Sequence record: MN871451.1
Reading direction: 5' to 3' (one strand)
Length of the DNA: 64,000 bases
The translations under genes were made by a program, and so were the position numbers. The notes under the pieces were generated by a model that was not told the origin of the DNA, made no database searches, and was given only the letters and a program-made list of their open reading frames with translations. Shown here piece after piece: positions 4,337-55,751 of this stretch; positions within the stretch are counted from its first letter, which is position 1; each line of letters starts with the position of its first letter.

Positions 4337-4984
4337 ATGAGTAAACCAGAACTTAAAATCTTCCAGACCGGTAACTTCACGTTGGATAACGCTACGGAAA
4401 CTTTGACCCTGACCGTTCCAATCAGTGCGGAAGAAACTCAAAACTTCGAGAACGTGCCACACCCAGGGAGCAAGTTATTGGACGAACCCGTTGTCTTCAG
4501 TAGTGTTATCGGTCAGTACGGTAGCGCAACCGCTATTGAGGAACTGAATGCAGCGGTAGGAGAGGATCACAAAGATCTCTTCTGGGTACTCTTTGAACTC
4601 TGTGCGACTTTCCCAACAGTGCAGCAGATTGCTCTTGATCTCACTCGCCCGGATATTCCTGCGGTGATGTTGAAGGTGAAAGAAGGCGTGCACAAATACG
4701 CATGGTGGCATCGAGGAACAACACACATCTTCGTGGCGGCAGAAGTATTGTCATTGCCTGTCGATAACGTCGAGGGGAACAGTATACCGTTTAATCCGGG
4801 TGAGCTGCTGTACGCATTCAGTGTCGTCGCGGAACATATCCGACTCGGTACTACGCGTTTTGTTATTGGTAATCTGGTTGACCGTGAACGCGTCTATATC
4901 AGCTTCTTTGATCACGAGATTGTCGATTTCCGGACGAATCTTGATTTCCCTTTGATGAAAGAGCGGGTGATTTCGGTACAATAG
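4337..4984 (+). CDS. Hypothetical protein
   Basis: 215 aa ORF with GGAAAAG RBS. Confidence 0.7.
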   Translation: MSKPELKIFQTGNFTLDNATETLTLTVPISAEETQNFENVPHPGSKLLDEPVVFSSVIGQYGSATAIEELNAAVGEDHKDLFWVLFELCATFPTVQQIALDLTRPDIPAVMLKVKEGVHKYAWWHRGTTHIFVAAEVLSLPVDNVEGNSIPFNPGELLYAFSVVAEHIRLGTTRFVIGNLVDRERVYISFFDHEIVDFRTNLDFPLMKERVISVQ

Positions 4985-5080
4985 TTCGCCTTTCTATAGT
5001 CAGGGTATGCCCGGTTACGTTGAGATACGTAACCAAGGGTTACCTTGGCTTTCTTTTGATTTGAATAGGAAATATGAGAA

Positions 5081-5761
5081 ATGCCAAACTATTTCTGGGC
5101 GCTTGTCCTTTGCCTGGTAAGCATTATTGCTACCCCAGCAACCGCATCTGTCTCGACTAATAGCGTAGGCTTTGCAAAGCATAGCGATACCTTATATCGA
5201 GTATCTCAAAAAACCGACGTTAAAATGATTGACTTGGTTACCATGGCTTCCATTGAAAGTACGATGGGCGCCGGTATGCACAATAAACACTCTTCAGCAA
5301 AAGGACTATTTGGTTTTACAGATCGAACGTGGCGAGCCACGGTAAAGAAGTACGGTAAACAGTACGGGGTCAAACCCGGAACCAGTGTAAAAAACTCACG
5401 TGCGAACACGCTTATGGCGGTAGCGTACATGAAGGAGAACAAAGAGTTTTTAGAGCGTTCACTCCAGCGTCAGGTCGGGATCAATGAAATCTACATGGCC
5501 CATCTGTTAGGACCCGGCGGTGCAGTGAAAATATTGAAGGCACGAAATGATCGGTTAGCGGTAAGGGTGGCAGGAGGCGCAGCAGGTAATCGCGCGTACT
5601 TCTACACTGATAAAGGTAAACCCCGCACAGTTGCCGGATTCAAGCAATACGTCAACTCCGTCGTTTCAAATCACCGCAAGGCGTATAAACAGGAAGTCAC
5701 GCTTTACGCGTTTCAGAACCAGTTACCTATAGCCCTTGCAGATAACCATTCACCTCGCTGA
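5081..5761 (+). CDS. SLT-type lytic transglycosylase with N-terminal signal peptide
   Basis: Hydrophobic leader ending ATPATA; catalytic Glu in ASIES; GLFGF...TW; YMAHLLGPGGA as in phiKZ gp144-like catalytic domains. Confidence 0.75.
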   Translation: MPNYFWALVLCLVSIIATPATASVSTNSVGFAKHSDTLYRVSQKTDVKMIDLVTMASIESTMGAGMHNKHSSAKGLFGFTDRTWRATVKKYGKQYGVKPGTSVKNSRANTLMAVAYMKENKEFLERSLQRQVGINEIYMAHLLGPGGAVKILKARNDRLAVRVAGGAAGNRAYFYTDKGKPRTVAGFKQYVNSVVSNHRKAYKQEVTLYAFQNQLPIALADNHSPR

Positions 5762-19946: not shown

Positions 19947-21848
19947 ATGGCCTTACGTGATGACGATCACAACAAAAACAAAGCAGAAGAAGCAGCAGTA
20001 GAAACTGGTGCGCAGGAAACTTCTCGCGACGAAGGTCGCCAGGAAGAATCCTCTGCACGCCGCCGTTCCTTTTACACCCGTTCCAACGAAAATGATTCCC
20101 GTCAGGAGAAAAAAGTGACTTCATCCTATAACTTCCGTAAAGATGCGCCAGTACTGTCCCTGAACTCTGCGGCAGGCGACGTAGCCAAATTCGTCGAACT
20201 GACCAAAGAAATCCAGAAACAGCACAGCGCCGCGATCAGCCTGAACGGTGTCCTGGAATGGACGGTAACGCCGGCAACAGGCAAAGATACCCAAATGAAA
20301 CTGGACGCTGCGGTCATCGCTGCCCGTCTGAAAGACAACGGCATGATCTTCGCGTCTACCGTGATCTTCGTGGGTAACACCGTGATGCCGAAACAGGCCG
20401 TGCAGGTTGGTCGTGACCACACCGTGCGTTTCACCACCACCGCAAACGACCAGTACGAAGCGATCGGCTATAAAGAGTCCCTGGACGATCTGATTGCCCT
20501 GTCCAACCCGGCATTCACCGGCCAGGTTCAGCATCTGGCGGCGTCCCCGATCTTCCTGGACAAACCGACCGACGCAGAACTGGAGCGTATCGCTTCTGCC
20601 GTGATCAACCAGATCATCTATTCCGTTAACGCGATCCTGACCACTAACGAGTTCAGCATTGCGGCGCTGGACCTGAAAAATAACGATCTGCTGGCGAACA
20701 TCGCGTTCCATCAAGGTGACGTTGCTGACGACATCACCGAAATGCCGCATCGCGCCGATATCGTTGTTGATCTGATGGTGGCGCCGCGTGACGAACGTCG
20801 TGGCGGTATTGTTAACGTATTGTCCGAGCGTGAGTCCACTCAGCTGGCCGGTCTGATCTCCCACGTCGACCTGTATTACAAAGGCGAAGAAGAGCAGTCC
20901 AACAGTTTCTTTGCACTGCGCAAAAAGAAAGCGGAAGACTTCGATACCCGTATCTACGGTATCGCTCTGGTGATCAGCGATCTGAAATGCGTGGCGATTC
21001 CTGAATACCTGATGTTCTCTCTGGCACAGGTATCTGCACTGATGACTGAACCGGCTCTGATTCAGGGTCTGCGTCCGCTGAACACCAAAGGCGCGCTGCG
21101 TACCGCTGAAGCTCTGACCTATGAACTGAAAGGCGAGTTTGAAAAACTCCCGGAAGTTCTGAACGACGACGAATGGGCTGGCCTGGTGGCTAACGTTGTT
21201 CGTGAGAACAGCCAGATCGTTCAGATCCAGATCCCGCGTTCTTCCATCAACACCCCGCTGCTGCAGCTGCTGGTTGATGCGTGCGACGAAACGAACCCGA
21301 ACCGTAAAGAAGCTGTTGACGTGCTGATCGAAGCCGCCGACAACATCTCCGGCGATCGTTTCTCTACCATCATGAACACCTCAGATCTGTACGACGTGGG
21401 TATCATCCGCGACATGCCGCAACTGCTGGGCACCTGGATCGACGAACAGGGTCATAAACGTGACCTGCGTGAAATCGGTTACTACGAAATTCTGACCAAC
21501 TTCGGTCTGAAATCTCCGCAGGTGGTTGCCGATTACGATCGTTGCCTGAACGACGATTCGATCGATCTGCAAGTCCGTATGGACCAGATGGAAAAAATCA
21601 TCGAAGACTACACCGGCGGTCAGTATCAGATCACCGACCGTGCAGACGTCATCGAAGTGAACGCCAACTGGCTGTTCGGCCTGACCCGCGCACTGTCTGC
21701 AGCAGGCATGGTGGTTACCGCTGATGGTATTACTCAGGATGGCCGTACCAGCCGTCGTGGTTATACCTCTCGTTACGAATCCAACGGCTATGACGGTGCA
21801 GGTTTCCGTTCTCGTGCCCGTTCTTCTTACGGTTTCGGCGGTCGTTAA
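19947..21848 (+). CDS. chmA: Chimallin, major phage nuclear shell protein
   Basis: 633 aa; lies directly upstream of the nvRNAP beta'-N gene as in phiKZ gp54/gp55; very strong high-expression codon bias; disordered N-terminus and R/G/Y/S-rich C-terminal tail; phuZ nearby. Confidence 0.85.
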   Translation: MALRDDDHNKNKAEEAAVETGAQETSRDEGRQEESSARRRSFYTRSNENDSRQEKKVTSSYNFRKDAPVLSLNSAAGDVAKFVELTKEIQKQHSAAISLNGVLEWTVTPATGKDTQMKLDAAVIAARLKDNGMIFASTVIFVGNTVMPKQAVQVGRDHTVRFTTTANDQYEAIGYKESLDDLIALSNPAFTGQVQHLAASPIFLDKPTDAELERIASAVINQIIYSVNAILTTNEFSIAALDLKNNDLLANIAFHQGDVADDITEMPHRADIVVDLMVAPRDERRGGIVNVLSERESTQLAGLISHVDLYYKGEEEQSNSFFALRKKKAEDFDTRIYGIALVISDLKCVAIPEYLMFSLAQVSALMTEPALIQGLRPLNTKGALRTAEALTYELKGEFEKLPEVLNDDEWAGLVANVVRENSQIVQIQIPRSSINTPLLQLLVDACDETNPNRKEAVDVLIEAADNISGDRFSTIMNTSDLYDVGIIRDMPQLLGTWIDEQGHKRDLREIGYYEILTNFGLKSPQVVADYDRCLNDDSIDLQVRMDQMEKIIEDYTGGQYQITDRADVIEVNANWLFGLTRALSAAGMVVTADGITQDGRTSRRGYTSRYESNGYDGAGFRSRARSSYGFGGR

Positions 21849-40568: not shown

Positions 40569-40780
40569 TCGCCCCGCCGCCTATTCACTTATACCGAACG
40601 GCAATCTCTCTCCTGACGGAAGGAGGGAGAGTTTTATTTCTTTCTATCGAAAGATTCTTTAGTATCGTTAATTCAAGGATTAAATAAACTAAGAAATAAA
40701 TATTCCTAATCTATTCTCTCTAACGTTCGAATAGAGGAAATTAAAATTTTACTACTTTTATTATTATGAACAAAATTGAA

Positions 40781-51044: not shown

Positions 51045-51076
51045 CAAAAAGAAAGGGTACGCCCTTTCTTTTTTTT
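51045..51076 (+). terminator. Intrinsic terminator
   Basis: AAAAAGAAAGGG-TACG-CCCTTTCTTTTTTTT. Confidence 0.9.
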
Positions 51077-51096
51077 ATTTTACGTCGTTAACTAGT

Positions 51097-51104
51097 TTAT
51101 GAAC
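51097..51104 (+). promoter_or_regulatory. Putative nvRNAP (late-type TATG) promoter
   Basis: TTATGAAC; identical copies at 40764, 53637, 55499 and 57091, all intergenic. Confidence 0.5.
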
Positions 51105-51139
51105 AAACTTTATTTTCACTCTTATCGTAAGGAAATCAA

Positions 51140-51907
51140 ATGGCTAAGTTACACGAAGTATTGGCAGCAGAACCCACTCGCACCAAACAAGTGCAAGTCC
51201 TGATCGAAGACGCCAGTAAAAAATTCAATAAATCGGCTGAATATTTCAGCGGGTTTGATAAAACCCTGAAACTGCACGAAGACAACGACGCCAACGCCGC
51301 GATCGAAAAAAGCGAAAGTACCAGCAAGGCAGTGATCACCACTGTAGCCGAAACGCTGCAGTACCTCTTCGAATATTTCGCCACGGCAGAAGACCTTCGC
51401 CTGCAAAAAGCCCTGACTAACCAGGTAGCAAAAGCAGACATCATGTTCAAAGGCGAAGTCCTCGTTTCTGGAGTGCCGGTAGATGAACTCCTGGGCCTGG
51501 AAAAACGCCTGGCGGAACTGCGCAAACTGATCGCCGCTGCCCCTACTCTGGATTCGTCCAAACAATGGGAACGCGATAGCAACAGCACCTACGGATTCCG
51601 TACCGTGACGGACGAAGTCACGACGAAAACCGAGAAAGTGCTCACTCCGGTTATCCTGGCGCCGGCTACCGACCACCACCCTGCACAGGTGAAAGAATCG
51701 GAAAGCACCGTCGTAATCGGTAGCTTCACCCGTAAAAGCTATTCCGGCGCCTGCACCCCGATGCAGAAAGCCAACGCACTGCGTGATATCGACGAACTGA
51801 TCGTTGAAGTCACTAATGCACGTATGCGTGCAAACTGCACCGAAGTTGTTCAGGGTTCTATCGGCGAAGTACTGACCAACGTGATTCTGAAAAACTTCAC
51901 TGCTTAA
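51140..51907 (+). CDS. Helical protein of unknown function with APATDHHPAQV motif, linked to the downstream tRNA-like RNA
   Basis: 255 aa; strong high-expression codon bias; resembles an uncharacterised phage/bacterial family recalled from memory (unverified). Confidence 0.8.
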   Translation: MAKLHEVLAAEPTRTKQVQVLIEDASKKFNKSAEYFSGFDKTLKLHEDNDANAAIEKSESTSKAVITTVAETLQYLFEYFATAEDLRLQKALTNQVAKADIMFKGEVLVSGVPVDELLGLEKRLAELRKLIAAAPTLDSSKQWERDSNSTYGFRTVTDEVTTKTEKVLTPVILAPATDHHPAQVKESESTVVIGSFTRKSYSGACTPMQKANALRDIDELIVEVTNARMRANCTEVVQGSIGEVLTNVILKNFTA

Positions 51908-51909
51908 TG

Positions 51910-52415
51910 TGTTAGTAATGGGTATTCTCACGAGTGCCCATTGATAATAAAGATTGAGGCCAACCTTATCTTTATTGTTAGTCCGTGTTGCAGGTGTGAT
52001 GACCCCACTGGAAGTTCGACTCTTTCTTCTCCCACCAAACTATGGGAGAATGGCGGAATTGGTAGACGCAGTCATCAATGCACCCATAATGCGACCCGGA
52101 TGGTTAGTGTTAACTTTATCTTATCGCCTCACACGCTTAAAGATAAAGAGTAAACAGTAAAATAGCGGACTGAACTTTCTTTCTCTTACGGAAAGAATTC
52201 TAGAGGTCGCGGATTCGAATTCCGCTCTGCCTACCTGGACACATTCACAGAGTGTTTCTTGGAGGCAGATAGCTCAGCCGGTAGAGCACTAGATTATAAA
52301 ATAAAACTTCCAATCTTATTCTTAGATAGGTCGCGCTAAATTCTGTTTATAGCTGAATGGCTATGGGCGGTGTTGGGGATGGTTATATCCTTACCTCCGC
52401 CCTTCTTACCACAAA
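51910..52415 (+). ncRNA. Structured RNA with two circularly permuted tRNA-like (YrlA/Y-RNA-like) modules
   Basis: Module 1 at 51999..52075 and module 2 at 52199..52293, each ordered T-arm, 3' acceptor strand, linker, 5' acceptor strand, D-arm, with 7-bp acceptor pairing. Confidence 0.75.
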
Positions 52416-52546
52416 AGTTTCTTTTTCAAAGAGATCACTTTTTGATAAATAAATTAATCGAGAGAGGAGGGAATTCCCTCCTCTCTCCTATGCTTTTTTA
52501 CGGTAAACTGTTTTAATGTAGAAGACACTTTTTAATTGAGGAATTT

Positions 52547-54030: not shown

Positions 54031-54147
54031 GCGCCTCTTTATTCCGTGACATGATTAATGCACATGTTGGGCCAACTTGTCAGCCTCTCAAATTCACTGT
54101 GGCGGTTATGCCGCTTGACACCCATACTTTCCTTAAAGGGAATGCAA

Positions 54148-55005
54148 ATGAAGAAACTTGCTTTTGCCGTTATTTCGGTAGCGTTACTTTGCATGAGTGC
54201 TGGCGTATCCGCGGCCGATGGCAAAATTGTTATCACCACCGGTCAACAAGGTTTAACCTATAACGCCATTTATGGTGTAAACTTAGCCAGTGCTCTGGGT
54301 GAGTACGGTTACCAGACCTCGGTTGTCCCTTCTAAAGGCTCGCTCGATAACCTTGATCGTGTAGCCTCTGGAGAAGCCACTATCGGGTTTACCCAAGCTG
54401 ATGCCTATCAGTTCTGGCGTTCGCGCCATGCCAACGAAGCCCAGAACGTTGATATCATTGGCGAACTGGCCAGTGAGTGCGTCTTTGTCGCCGTCAAGAA
54501 AGACGGTAAGGTCACCAGTAAAGGTGATTTAAAAGAAGGTACGAAGATCGCTGTGGGTGAACCTACCTCTGGATCTTACGCTTCGTGGCAGTATCTCCAG
54601 ACATTGGAGAAAAACTACGCGAAAGTTGAAACGTATGCCAAAGGCGGTATCCGTTCCCTGGCTAAAGTGAATACTGGCGAATACGACGCGTTCCTTTGGG
54701 TTTCTGCACCCGACCGGAATAATAAATTCCTGGACGCAGTCATGCAAAAAGACTCGGGACTCGAGATCATTGATTTCAACTCCTGGAATGCTGATGCAAA
54801 ACTGCCGAACGGTAAAGCGGTGTACACGATCGAAAAAGCAACAACCGACTCGGGTATCATTTTCAATTCGACCGTAAAAGTCCCTTGCACTAAAACCCTG
54901 GTGGTAGCGAATACCTCAGGCGACAGCGACCAGTTCCTTGAAGATGCCTCTACAATTCTTCTGAAGAACTCTGCGCGCGTTCAGGGTACAGCGTCAGGAA
55001 AATAA
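54148..55005 (+). CDS. TAXI-family (TRAP-associated) periplasmic solute-binding protein-like
   Basis: Signal peptide MKKLAFAVISVALL; TTGQQGLTY, SKGSLDNLDRV, GFTQAD, KIAVGEPTSGS. Confidence 0.7.
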   Translation: MKKLAFAVISVALLCMSAGVSAADGKIVITTGQQGLTYNAIYGVNLASALGEYGYQTSVVPSKGSLDNLDRVASGEATIGFTQADAYQFWRSRHANEAQNVDIIGELASECVFVAVKKDGKVTSKGDLKEGTKIAVGEPTSGSYASWQYLQTLEKNYAKVETYAKGGIRSLAKVNTGEYDAFLWVSAPDRNNKFLDAVMQKDSGLEIIDFNSWNADAKLPNGKAVYTIEKATTDSGIIFNSTVKVPCTKTLVVANTSGDSDQFLEDASTILLKNSARVQGTASGK

Positions 55006-55649: not shown

Positions 55650-55751
55650 TGTTCTCGTAGCTCAACTAGGTAGAGCGCCTGCATCGGCGGCCACTGCGCC
55701 GCCCACTGCTTAGCAGGAGGTTGCCGGTTCAAATCCGGAAGGGAACAACCA
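55650..55751 (+). ncRNA. tRNA-like RNA with a 30-nt hairpin-containing insert in place of the anticodon loop
   Basis: D-arm GCTC/GAGC, stem CCTGC/GCAGG, T-loop TTCAAAT, acceptor TGTTCTC/GGGAACA, A-CCA. Confidence 0.7.

Follow-up and report, generated by a model that had tools for sequence, protein, structure and literature searches.

What is encoded by the long, base-paired and apparently gene-free stretch that follows a strongly codon-biased gene in sequence record MN871451.1? The window analysed here is a stretch of 64,000 nucleotides (nt) of this record, the 302-kb genome of the Serratia/Klebsiella phage KpYy_2_45. An earlier note, made from the letters and open reading frames (ORFs) of the window, had pointed to positions 51097-52415 as a candidate ribonucleoprotein (RNP) system, in which an abundant protein would be accompanied by a tandem tRNA mimic whose halves stand in reverse order. 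The comparisons presented below indicate that a gene of the protein family DUF7873 and a predicted RNA with such permuted tRNA-like modules form a cassette that is conserved across very diverse phages.

The linkage between gene and RNA was examined with a profile of 35 DUF7873 proteins, which led to 80 loci in IMG/VR (33-50% amino acid (aa) identity). A regular expression demanding a T-arm, a 7-nt 3' acceptor strand, a perfectly complementary 5' strand at most 90 nt away and a D-arm detected a permuted module 50-1500 nt downstream of the gene, on the same strand, in approximately 75 of the 80 loci, and almost nowhere else in these loci. A covariance model (CM), built from 63 distinct modules in a fixed-format, N-padded alignment, gave matches of at least 29 bits on the + strand, within approximately 1.5 kb downstream, in 73 of 77 non-redundant IMG/VR loci; in loci L037, L041, L061, L069 and L072 the linker of the module measures 80 to approximately 560 nt. 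Altogether, a same-strand downstream permuted module was found in 77 of the 77 metagenomic DUF7873 loci examined, and in the six cultured relatives checked (Ralstonia phiRSL1 (ORF270), Rhizobium RHph_Y65, Vibrio K479, Gordonia Ronaldo, Arthrobacter Racecar and Pseudanabaena PA-SR01; 6/6). The earlier note had proposed comparing the DNA downstream of homologous genes, and every DUF7873 locus examined indeed has the downstream module, with covariation. In the whole KpYy_2_45 genome only two modules score well on the CM (46.4 and 41.7 bits), and the protein genes flanking the cassette vary from locus to locus. The same gene-plus-RNA pair in about eighty unrelated phages thus has the look of a viral protein-RNA system that is connected with tRNA biology and has yet to be described.

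The second line of evidence is the pairing itself. Each of the 21 core pairs has changed on both sides among the 63 distinct modules, and occurs as four to six pair types. In this set, which was chosen by a regular expression that itself demands pairing, 97.4% of the cells are paired, versus 58.5% in shuffles and 38-50% with slid partners; a second set of 140 distinct sequences, derived with the CM, gives 93.5% versus 56.7% in its control. The anticodon stem lies outside the demands of the expression, and at least four consecutive pairs are present there in 63 of 84 modules, compared with 12 (maximum 20) when partners are permuted. Likewise, U8 and A14, neither of them demanded, reach 90% conservation or more, and G53-C61 hardly varies, which argues that the tRNA elbow is preserved, while the frequent G-U pairs point to a structure formed by the RNA of the + strand.

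The same picture emerges at short range from vB_KpM_FBKp24 (phiKp24), which, like Centimanus, is approximately 90% identical to KpYy_2_45 (10 near-identical isolates of the latter are known). With 95.0% identity between the two phages, the RNA (51908-52350) is the best-conserved segment of the locus: the DUF7873 coding sequence reaches 88.8% (71.5% when third codon positions are taken alone), and neighbouring genes 58-83%. Substitutions in FBKp24 are compensatory or compatible with the structure (U51989-G52093 to A-U; A51999-U52075 to G-U; A52153-U52347 to G-U), and the change of G51987 to A is matched by that of C52096 to U. These comparative data refute the idea that the modules are chance similarities, tRNA pseudogenes in decay or the place where two tRNA genes adjoin, whose probability we regard as practically nil: the CM does match junctions within real tRNA arrays, mostly at low scores, but the modules have no complete tRNAs beside them, every locus shows the 3' acceptor strand pairing and covarying with a downstream 5' strand, and nucleotide conservation reaches 95%. 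A tRNA fragment of the attP type was also considered and rejected, because the two halves covary and form pairs inside a single molecule, and because the phages look lytic.

How is this RNA built? The sequence 3' of the DUF7873 gene comprises approximately 590 nt without an ORF, and the fold of 51905-52500 (596 nt) has a z-score of -10.4. The earlier note had described about 500 nt of paired, ORF-free sequence with no terminator in between, and this holds, the first terminator after the stop codon in the window standing at 52460. In both modules the parts follow one another as T-arm, 3' acceptor strand, discriminator-CC(A/U), linker, 5' acceptor strand, U8-N9 and D-arm, and the anticodon stem is made of the sequences flanking the module and runs on into closing helices; the helix map coincides with the places at which the note had put both modules and their closing helices. 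Positions 51075-52500 (+) constitute a single predicted transcription unit, bounded by terminators and consisting of the DUF7873 gene and the structured RNA, with the following features:

51046-51073 (+), intrinsic terminator of the upstream gene, 5' boundary of the unit (12-bp stem and T-run)
51097-51104 (+), TTATGAAC motif, tentative candidate for a phage promoter element (7 copies in the window versus 2.85 expected)
51140-51907 (+), gene of the 255-aa DUF7873 protein, codon-biased, acidic (pI 5.55), predicted alpha+beta fold with a long beta-hairpin (Pfam PF25283, E 2.7e-72)
51918-51980 (+), two hairpins directly past the stop codon (51918-51941; 51942-51980, with CUUAUCUUUAUUGUUAGU), from minimum-free-energy helices and the alignment of two-module loci
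51981-52101 (+), permuted tRNA-like module 1, with a tRNA-Leu-like D-arm (regular expression; CM R1 41.7 bits, E 5.5e-14; minimum-free-energy fold)
51981-51997/52080-52101 (+), closing helices of module 1
51998-52003/52071-52076 (+), anticodon stem of module 1
52010-52026 (+), T-arm of module 1
52027-52033 (+), 3' acceptor strand of module 1
52034-52037 (+), ACCA of module 1, within the 10-nt linker 52034-52043
52044-52050 (+), 5' acceptor strand of module 1
52053-52069 (+), D-arm of module 1
52114-52148 (+), inter-module hairpin with a UAUCGCCUCACAC box, kept in two-module relatives (alignment, helix map)
52150-52350 (+), permuted tRNA-like module 2 (CM R1 46.4 bits; Rfam YrlA 37.6 bits and beta_tmRNA 24.8 bits, both partial)
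52150-52171/52329-52350 (+), closing helix of module 2
52177-52197 (+), side hairpin of module 2
52199-52203/52289-52293 (+), anticodon stem of module 2
52209-52225 (+), T-arm of module 2
52226-52232 and 52263-52269 (+), 3' and 5' acceptor strands of module 2
52233-52236 (+), ACCU of module 2 (ACCA in FBKp24)
52233-52262 (+), linker hairpin of module 2, CAUUC...GAGUG (core 52241-52255)
52272-52287 (+), D-arm of module 2
approx. 52310-52323 (+), single-stranded AAUCUUAUUCUU in module 2
52351-52455 (+), three further hairpins (52351-52362, 52365-52402, 52416-52455; helix map)
52460-52500 (+), strong intrinsic terminator, 3' end of the unit (stem 52460-52487, 12 bp with 8 GC, and U-tract)

Both permuted domains are, on the predicted pairing, competent to form an L-shape. 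The functional RNA is predicted to comprise approximately 400-550 nt, i.e. more than the tRNA-like cores, because the flanks are conserved as well: CUUAUCUUUAUUGUUAGU in the hairpin 51942-51980 aligns to an array of (A/U)(U/G)CGU repeats in relatives, and the pairing of the middle 3' hairpin (52365-52402) survives multiple changes in FBKp24. The repeat boxes stand at 6-nt spacing before, between and after the modules, and ATCGT is 7.7-fold enriched downstream. A UAUCGCC...CAC box is conserved too, and one clade adds GGGGAAACC and CCGG-ACGGCAGGUACGCACG hairpins. The boxes of the window (51972-51986, 52121-52134 and 52310-52323) are a diverged form, with CUU or UGU replacing CGU, and the actinophage, Vibrio and Rhizobium loci have A(A/G)ACU-type boxes instead. 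The (A/U)(U/G)CGU box was accordingly rejected as a universal motif: it is clade-specific and strong in the loci of beta- and gammaproteobacterial phages. Such single-stranded repeats, which stand beside the tRNA-like domains at three conserved positions, could offer a multimeric protein an array of binding sites.

The number and type of modules also vary. The two-module arrangement read by the earlier note is correct for the window but is not a general trait: it is a clade feature, found in about half of the proteobacterial-type loci, where the first module has a tRNA-Leu-like D-arm and the second one of the GCUCAGYGGUAGAGC type, and other loci have a single module, often tRNA-Glu-like. Of 84 distinct modules, 52 carry N-CCA after the 3' acceptor strand; among those with short linkers (at most 20 nt) the share is 24 of 25, and the last base of these linkers, at position -1 of the 5' acceptor strand, is U. 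As linker length spans 6 to approximately 560 nt and the linker can host an HNH ORF, it appears to be dispensable. Long linkers prolong the acceptor stem as a hairpin, whose core is often CAUUC-loop-GAGUG. The core (window 52241-52255; L009, L011, L013 and L089) resembles the intervening segment of betaproteobacterial two-piece transfer-messenger RNA (tmRNA; RF01850 positions 86-150), and may be a shared processing signal. Two loci harbour endonuclease-like ORFs: in L072 an HNH-type homing-endonuclease-like ORF (4968-5465) lies inside the acceptor linker of the module, and in L032 a GIY-YIG-type ORF (5067-5711), missing in the close relative L031, lies between the DUF7873 gene and the RNA.

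What, then, is the protein? The ORF 51140-51907 matches Pfam DUF7873 over residues 1-251 with 243.8 bits (cutoff 27) and is a full-length member of the family. The earlier note had read here a helical 255-aa protein with the motif APATDHHPAQV; ORF and motif are as described, whereas the AlphaFold2 model is not simply helical but alpha+beta, with four long helices and a beta-hairpin of 16 residues per strand (predicted local distance difference test 87, predicted template modelling score 0.57). The note was right in seeing the codon bias of chimallin in this gene: its relative synonymous codon usage correlates with that of chimallin at r = 0.78, versus 0.40 with other genes, and its effective number of codons (40.9; window median 53.7) marks the second-strongest bias in the window, after chimallin itself (31.6). 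On this codon usage the DUF7873 gene looks highly expressed, and its protein abundant. An exhaustive profile search (E at most 0.001) yielded 2273 DUF7873 cluster representatives, nearly all of approximately 250 aa and single-domain. By contrast, 185,579 species genomes gave only 11 matches, all on contigs of metagenome-assembled genomes, which indicates that the family is essentially phage-borne. Invariant K, R, H, D and E positions occur in the alignment and do not by themselves identify a function. A profile search against PDB sequences returned no DUF7873 relative, PHROGs, NCBIfam and PADLOC gave no match for the protein, no paper naming DUF7873 was retrieved in a literature search, and gp048 is unmentioned in the structure paper on phiKp24.

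The explanation that we favour, with somewhat better than even confidence, is that DUF7873 and the RNA form a co-transcribed RNP that engages machinery reading the acceptor end or elbow of tRNAs. The RNA would be transcribed together with the DUF7873 gene, and each domain would fold as a tRNA body, with a 7-bp acceptor stacked on the T-arm and an intact elbow of D-arm and T-loop. By analogy with the YrlA RNA of Mycobacterium smegmatis, the 5' acceptor strand would be cut at its G+1 by host RNase P, and 3' trimming or CCA repair would remove the linker down to N-CCA, leaving a two-piece tRNA mimic with an acceptor end and no anticodon loop. DUF7873 would be its dedicated partner, in a role like that of Ro60 for YrlA or SmpB for tmRNA, and may bind the conserved single-stranded repeat boxes flanking the domains. 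The particle might then engage readers of the acceptor end and elbow, such as tRNA-directed toxins or defences acting on the CCA end, enzymes of tRNA processing and repair, or the ribosome, which would fit the frequent position of the gene in phage tRNA clusters. To the direct partnership of DUF7873 and RNA, for which the conserved linkage speaks, we would give about an even chance. A more far-reaching version is possible, though on the whole doubtful: that the pair represents a phage-specific, Ro60-independent class of RNP, in which an anticodon-less tRNA body matured by RNase P and CCA processing neutralizes host immunity or toxins acting on the acceptor end or elbow, or acts directly on ribosomes or tRNA repair in the course of infection. 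Any specific decoy role for the RNA seems unlikely.

Several observations weigh against this RNP explanation. With a pI of 5.55 the DUF7873 protein is acidic; sequence and structure searches recognized no RNA-binding family or fold in it, and its AlphaFold2 model has no match at E < 0.01 in PDB and BFVD (Foldseek). The DUF7873 gene and the RNA are not everywhere close together: some loci interpose 0.5-1.3 kb, holding small ORFs or a GIY-YIG gene. The CCA end is not universal: module 2 of the window shows ACCU in its place, and among Leu-like modules ACA or AUC is frequent, the acceptor then being closed into a long hairpin, so that maturation by RNase P and CCA processing may not hold for every module. 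Finally, as there is no anticodon loop, classical anticodon nucleases, which the earlier note had named among the possible targets, would not be decoyed, and only readers of the acceptor end or elbow could be.

Some of these points are better accommodated by the main rival, according to which the RNA is a cis-acting element of the 3' untranslated region (3'-UTR), its tRNA-like domains being processing and stability modules (through cleavage by RNase P and a tRNA-like 3' end that resists exonucleases) that raise DUF7873 expression without any protein binding, as in MALAT1/mascRNA and plant-virus tRNA-like 3' ends. Indeed, the RNA is always downstream and on the same strand, no terminator intervenes in the window, the gene looks highly expressed, and the acidic protein bears no RNA-binding signature. 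Nevertheless, conservation is higher in the RNA than in the coding sequence and extends to boxes outside the helices, no other highly expressed gene of the genome bears such an element, and the distance of 0.5-1.3 kb with extra ORFs in some loci fits poorly with a 3'-UTR. Moreover, the exclusive pairing of gene and RNA in phage lineages far apart from each other speaks more for a function in common than for a generic stabilizer. We thus hold the 3'-UTR element to be rather unlikely.

The genomic context is consistent with the tRNA-related function assumed for the RNP. The DUF7873 gene recurrently lies within or beside phage tRNA clusters, which points to tRNA biology, as does the neighbourhood of one cassette: in L084 (5760-9392), a PolyA_pol/CCA-adding-type nucleotidyltransferase and an RNA ligase (PF09414) stand just upstream of the DUF7873 gene. 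In the window, a phage-encoded TAXI-family solute-binding protein of the tripartite ATP-independent periplasmic (TRAP) type (54058-55005; NMT1_3 and Phosphonate-bd matches) is located between the cassette and the tRNA cluster, and looks like an auxiliary metabolic gene. The cluster itself includes, as its eighth tRNA-like match, an Rfam tRNA match of 97 nt (55651-55747, 38.9 bits) without an ARAGORN call. Over-long tRNA matches occur likewise in L019 (5566-5689, 124 nt) and L089 (2162-2287, 126 nt), and all three may be tRNAs with an insertion or intron.

As for the phage, when all 104 ORFs of the genome with 280 aa or more were scanned with Pfam, the matches included chimallin (19947-21845), a tubulin of the PhuZ type, the phiKZ major capsid protein and split subunits of RNA polymerase, which characterize KpYy_2_45 as a phiKZ-like nucleus-forming jumbo phage. 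Outside the window it encodes a Tad3-like Thoeris inhibitor (E 1.2e-24) and enzymes of nicotinamide adenine dinucleotide (NAD) salvage (NAPRTase, a NAMPT N-domain and a phosphoribosyl pyrophosphate synthetase-like protein), which suggests counter-defence against NAD-depleting immunity. The TTATGAAC motif seen by the earlier note is present at 51097-51104, starting 22 nt past the terminator 51046-51073; its copy number in the window was attained in 2 of 100 shuffles. Four copies lie in AT-rich intergenic DNA, two of them immediately past terminators, and TTATGAAC(A)AA occurs in such DNA at 40764, 51097, 55499 and 57091. It contains TATG, which we take to be the core of phiKZ late promoters, and the case for TTATGAAC as a promoter motif of this phage is only suggestive. 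A 260-aa antisense ORF (51149-51931, - strand) exceeds the real gene in length; it was rejected as a gene, since the DUF7873 match belongs to the + strand ORF, and is a by-product of the strong codon bias of the DUF7873 gene.

These results provide a first functional lead for DUF7873, with its more than 2,000 cluster representatives, and describe a widespread, strongly conserved family of phage non-coding RNAs without an entry in Rfam 15. A literature search returned no description of a phage permuted tRNA or of a phage Y RNA without Ro. If an RNP aimed at tRNA-directed defence or at translation is truly formed, the conflict between phage and host over tRNAs would have a participant of a new kind.

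To which known RNAs can this one be compared? The closest at hand are tRNAs themselves. ARAGORN made neither a tRNA nor a tmRNA call at the RNA, and Rfam no tRNA call in 51908-52500; the prediction of the earlier note that scanners would miss the RNA has thus proved accurate, and in relatives they have misread it. The segment equivalent to 52157-52236 (L001 5060-5139) is annotated as tRNA-Sup-TTA in phiKp24 and as tRNA-Stop(tta) in Centimanus and LPKP23, and the phiKp24 preprint treats it as a possible suppressor. We reject this annotation as a scanner artefact, made of the module-2 T-arm and an upstream hairpin, with no contiguous cloverleaf bearing a 7-nt anticodon loop; a published 'suppressor tRNA' is thereby corrected in Klebsiella jumbo phages considered for therapy. 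Permuted tRNA genes exist in some algae, and together with these annotations they might suggest that the modules are permuted genes for functional tRNAs, including tRNA-Sup-TTA, matured by end-joining. However, neither a conserved anticodon loop nor a potential one is present, the anticodon stem entering variable helices and junctions instead; the annotated 'tRNA' joins a poor 5' strand to the module-2 T-arm, with no ARAGORN call in the window; and no circularizing enzyme or RtcB is among the Pfam matches listed for the genome. Functional permuted tRNAs are therefore highly improbable.

The topology is, as the earlier note had recognized, that of YrlA-type Y RNAs: a permuted T-arm, a closed acceptor stem and a D-arm, the anticodon stem being prolonged into a long helix, next to the gene of a partner protein. 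The M. smegmatis YrlA has a 7-bp acceptor and is cleaved by RNase P and furnished with CCA in vivo, and the Ro60-binding helix of YrlA has a GNCGAAN0-1G motif in its 5' strand (PMC4201824). A genuine YrlA Y RNA using a Ro60/Rsr of the host, with DUF7873 unrelated, would account for this likeness, including the precedent for RNase P and CCA processing: the Rfam YrlA model (RF02553) aligns end to end on module 2 with 37.6 bits (E 3.5e-6) and scores 31.3-32.9 bits on three relatives, i.e. 31-38 bits in four loci. All of these scores remain far under the gathering threshold of 69, however, so that the comparison with Rfam suggested by the note speaks against membership. In the module 2 alignment the outer, Ro-binding helices of the model are deleted or non-canonical, and the GNCGAAN0-1G motif has no occurrence in 51908-52500. 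In keeping with the note, no TROVE/Ro60 was found in the window; neither TROVE/Ro60 nor RtcB is in the window or among the Pfam matches listed for the 104 ORFs, and no TROVE/Ro60 is in the 20-kb contexts of two relatives, whereas the linkage to DUF7873 is universal. The phage RNA further differs from YrlA in that its presumed partner gene, DUF7873, has a different predicted fold, tandem modules are common, conserved flanks and repeat boxes are added, and the total RNA reaches approximately 400-550 nt and lies 3' of the protein gene. On the three counts of score, Ro-binding helix and motif, and encoded Ro60, it is thus not a member of YrlA as far as these comparisons go, and a host-Ro60 Y RNA seems quite improbable.

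Two-piece tmRNA offers a different parallel, with the order T-arm, 3' acceptor-CCA, intervening segment and 5' acceptor, an intervening hairpin of the CAUUC...GAGUG type, and a helix that replaces the anticodon arm and opens into further structure; as with SmpB, a dedicated small protein partner is plausible. One could accordingly imagine a tmRNA-like, ribosome-directed particle, whose two-piece domain is charged by a synthetase indifferent to the anticodon and in which DUF7873 replaces the anticodon arm like SmpB. Beyond the gene order, beta_tmRNA matches the T-arm, acceptor, intervening hairpin and 5' acceptor in four loci (23-25 bits), N-CCA is conserved, and module 1 is Leu-like with A73, leucyl-tRNA synthetase being an enzyme that does not read the anticodon. 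But in module 2 this match (24.8 bits versus a threshold of 84) is confined to the T-arm, acceptor and linker, and neither a tag reading frame nor the pseudoknot set was detected in 51908-52500 (ARAGORN, Rfam). A tag ORF in the single-stranded stretch of module 2 was considered and rejected, the sole open stretch being broken by a 2-nt frame-breaking indel relative to FBKp24. In addition, CCA is missing or base-paired in many modules, the D-stems are canonical, unlike those of tmRNA, and the acceptor pair 3:70 is G-C in both window modules, with no G3:U70. By these comparisons the phage RNA is neither tmRNA nor tRNA, and we consider a tmRNA-like particle as improbable as the host-Ro60 Y RNA.

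GOLLD and ROOL are large structured RNAs of unknown function that are carried by phages, often among tRNA genes. The RNA described here resembles them in size, structure and location, and differs in giving no Rfam match to either, in its tRNA-like architecture and in the conserved protein gene attached to it. The tRNA-like structures of plant viruses and the mascRNA of MALAT1, for their part, are not permuted and are not tied to one specific protein family. The nearest relative in design is thus YrlA: Y-RNA-type tRNA mimicry extends to viruses in which no Ro60 was found, and the YrlA-type tRNA-mimic theme, here with a probable new partner protein, is widespread in phages.

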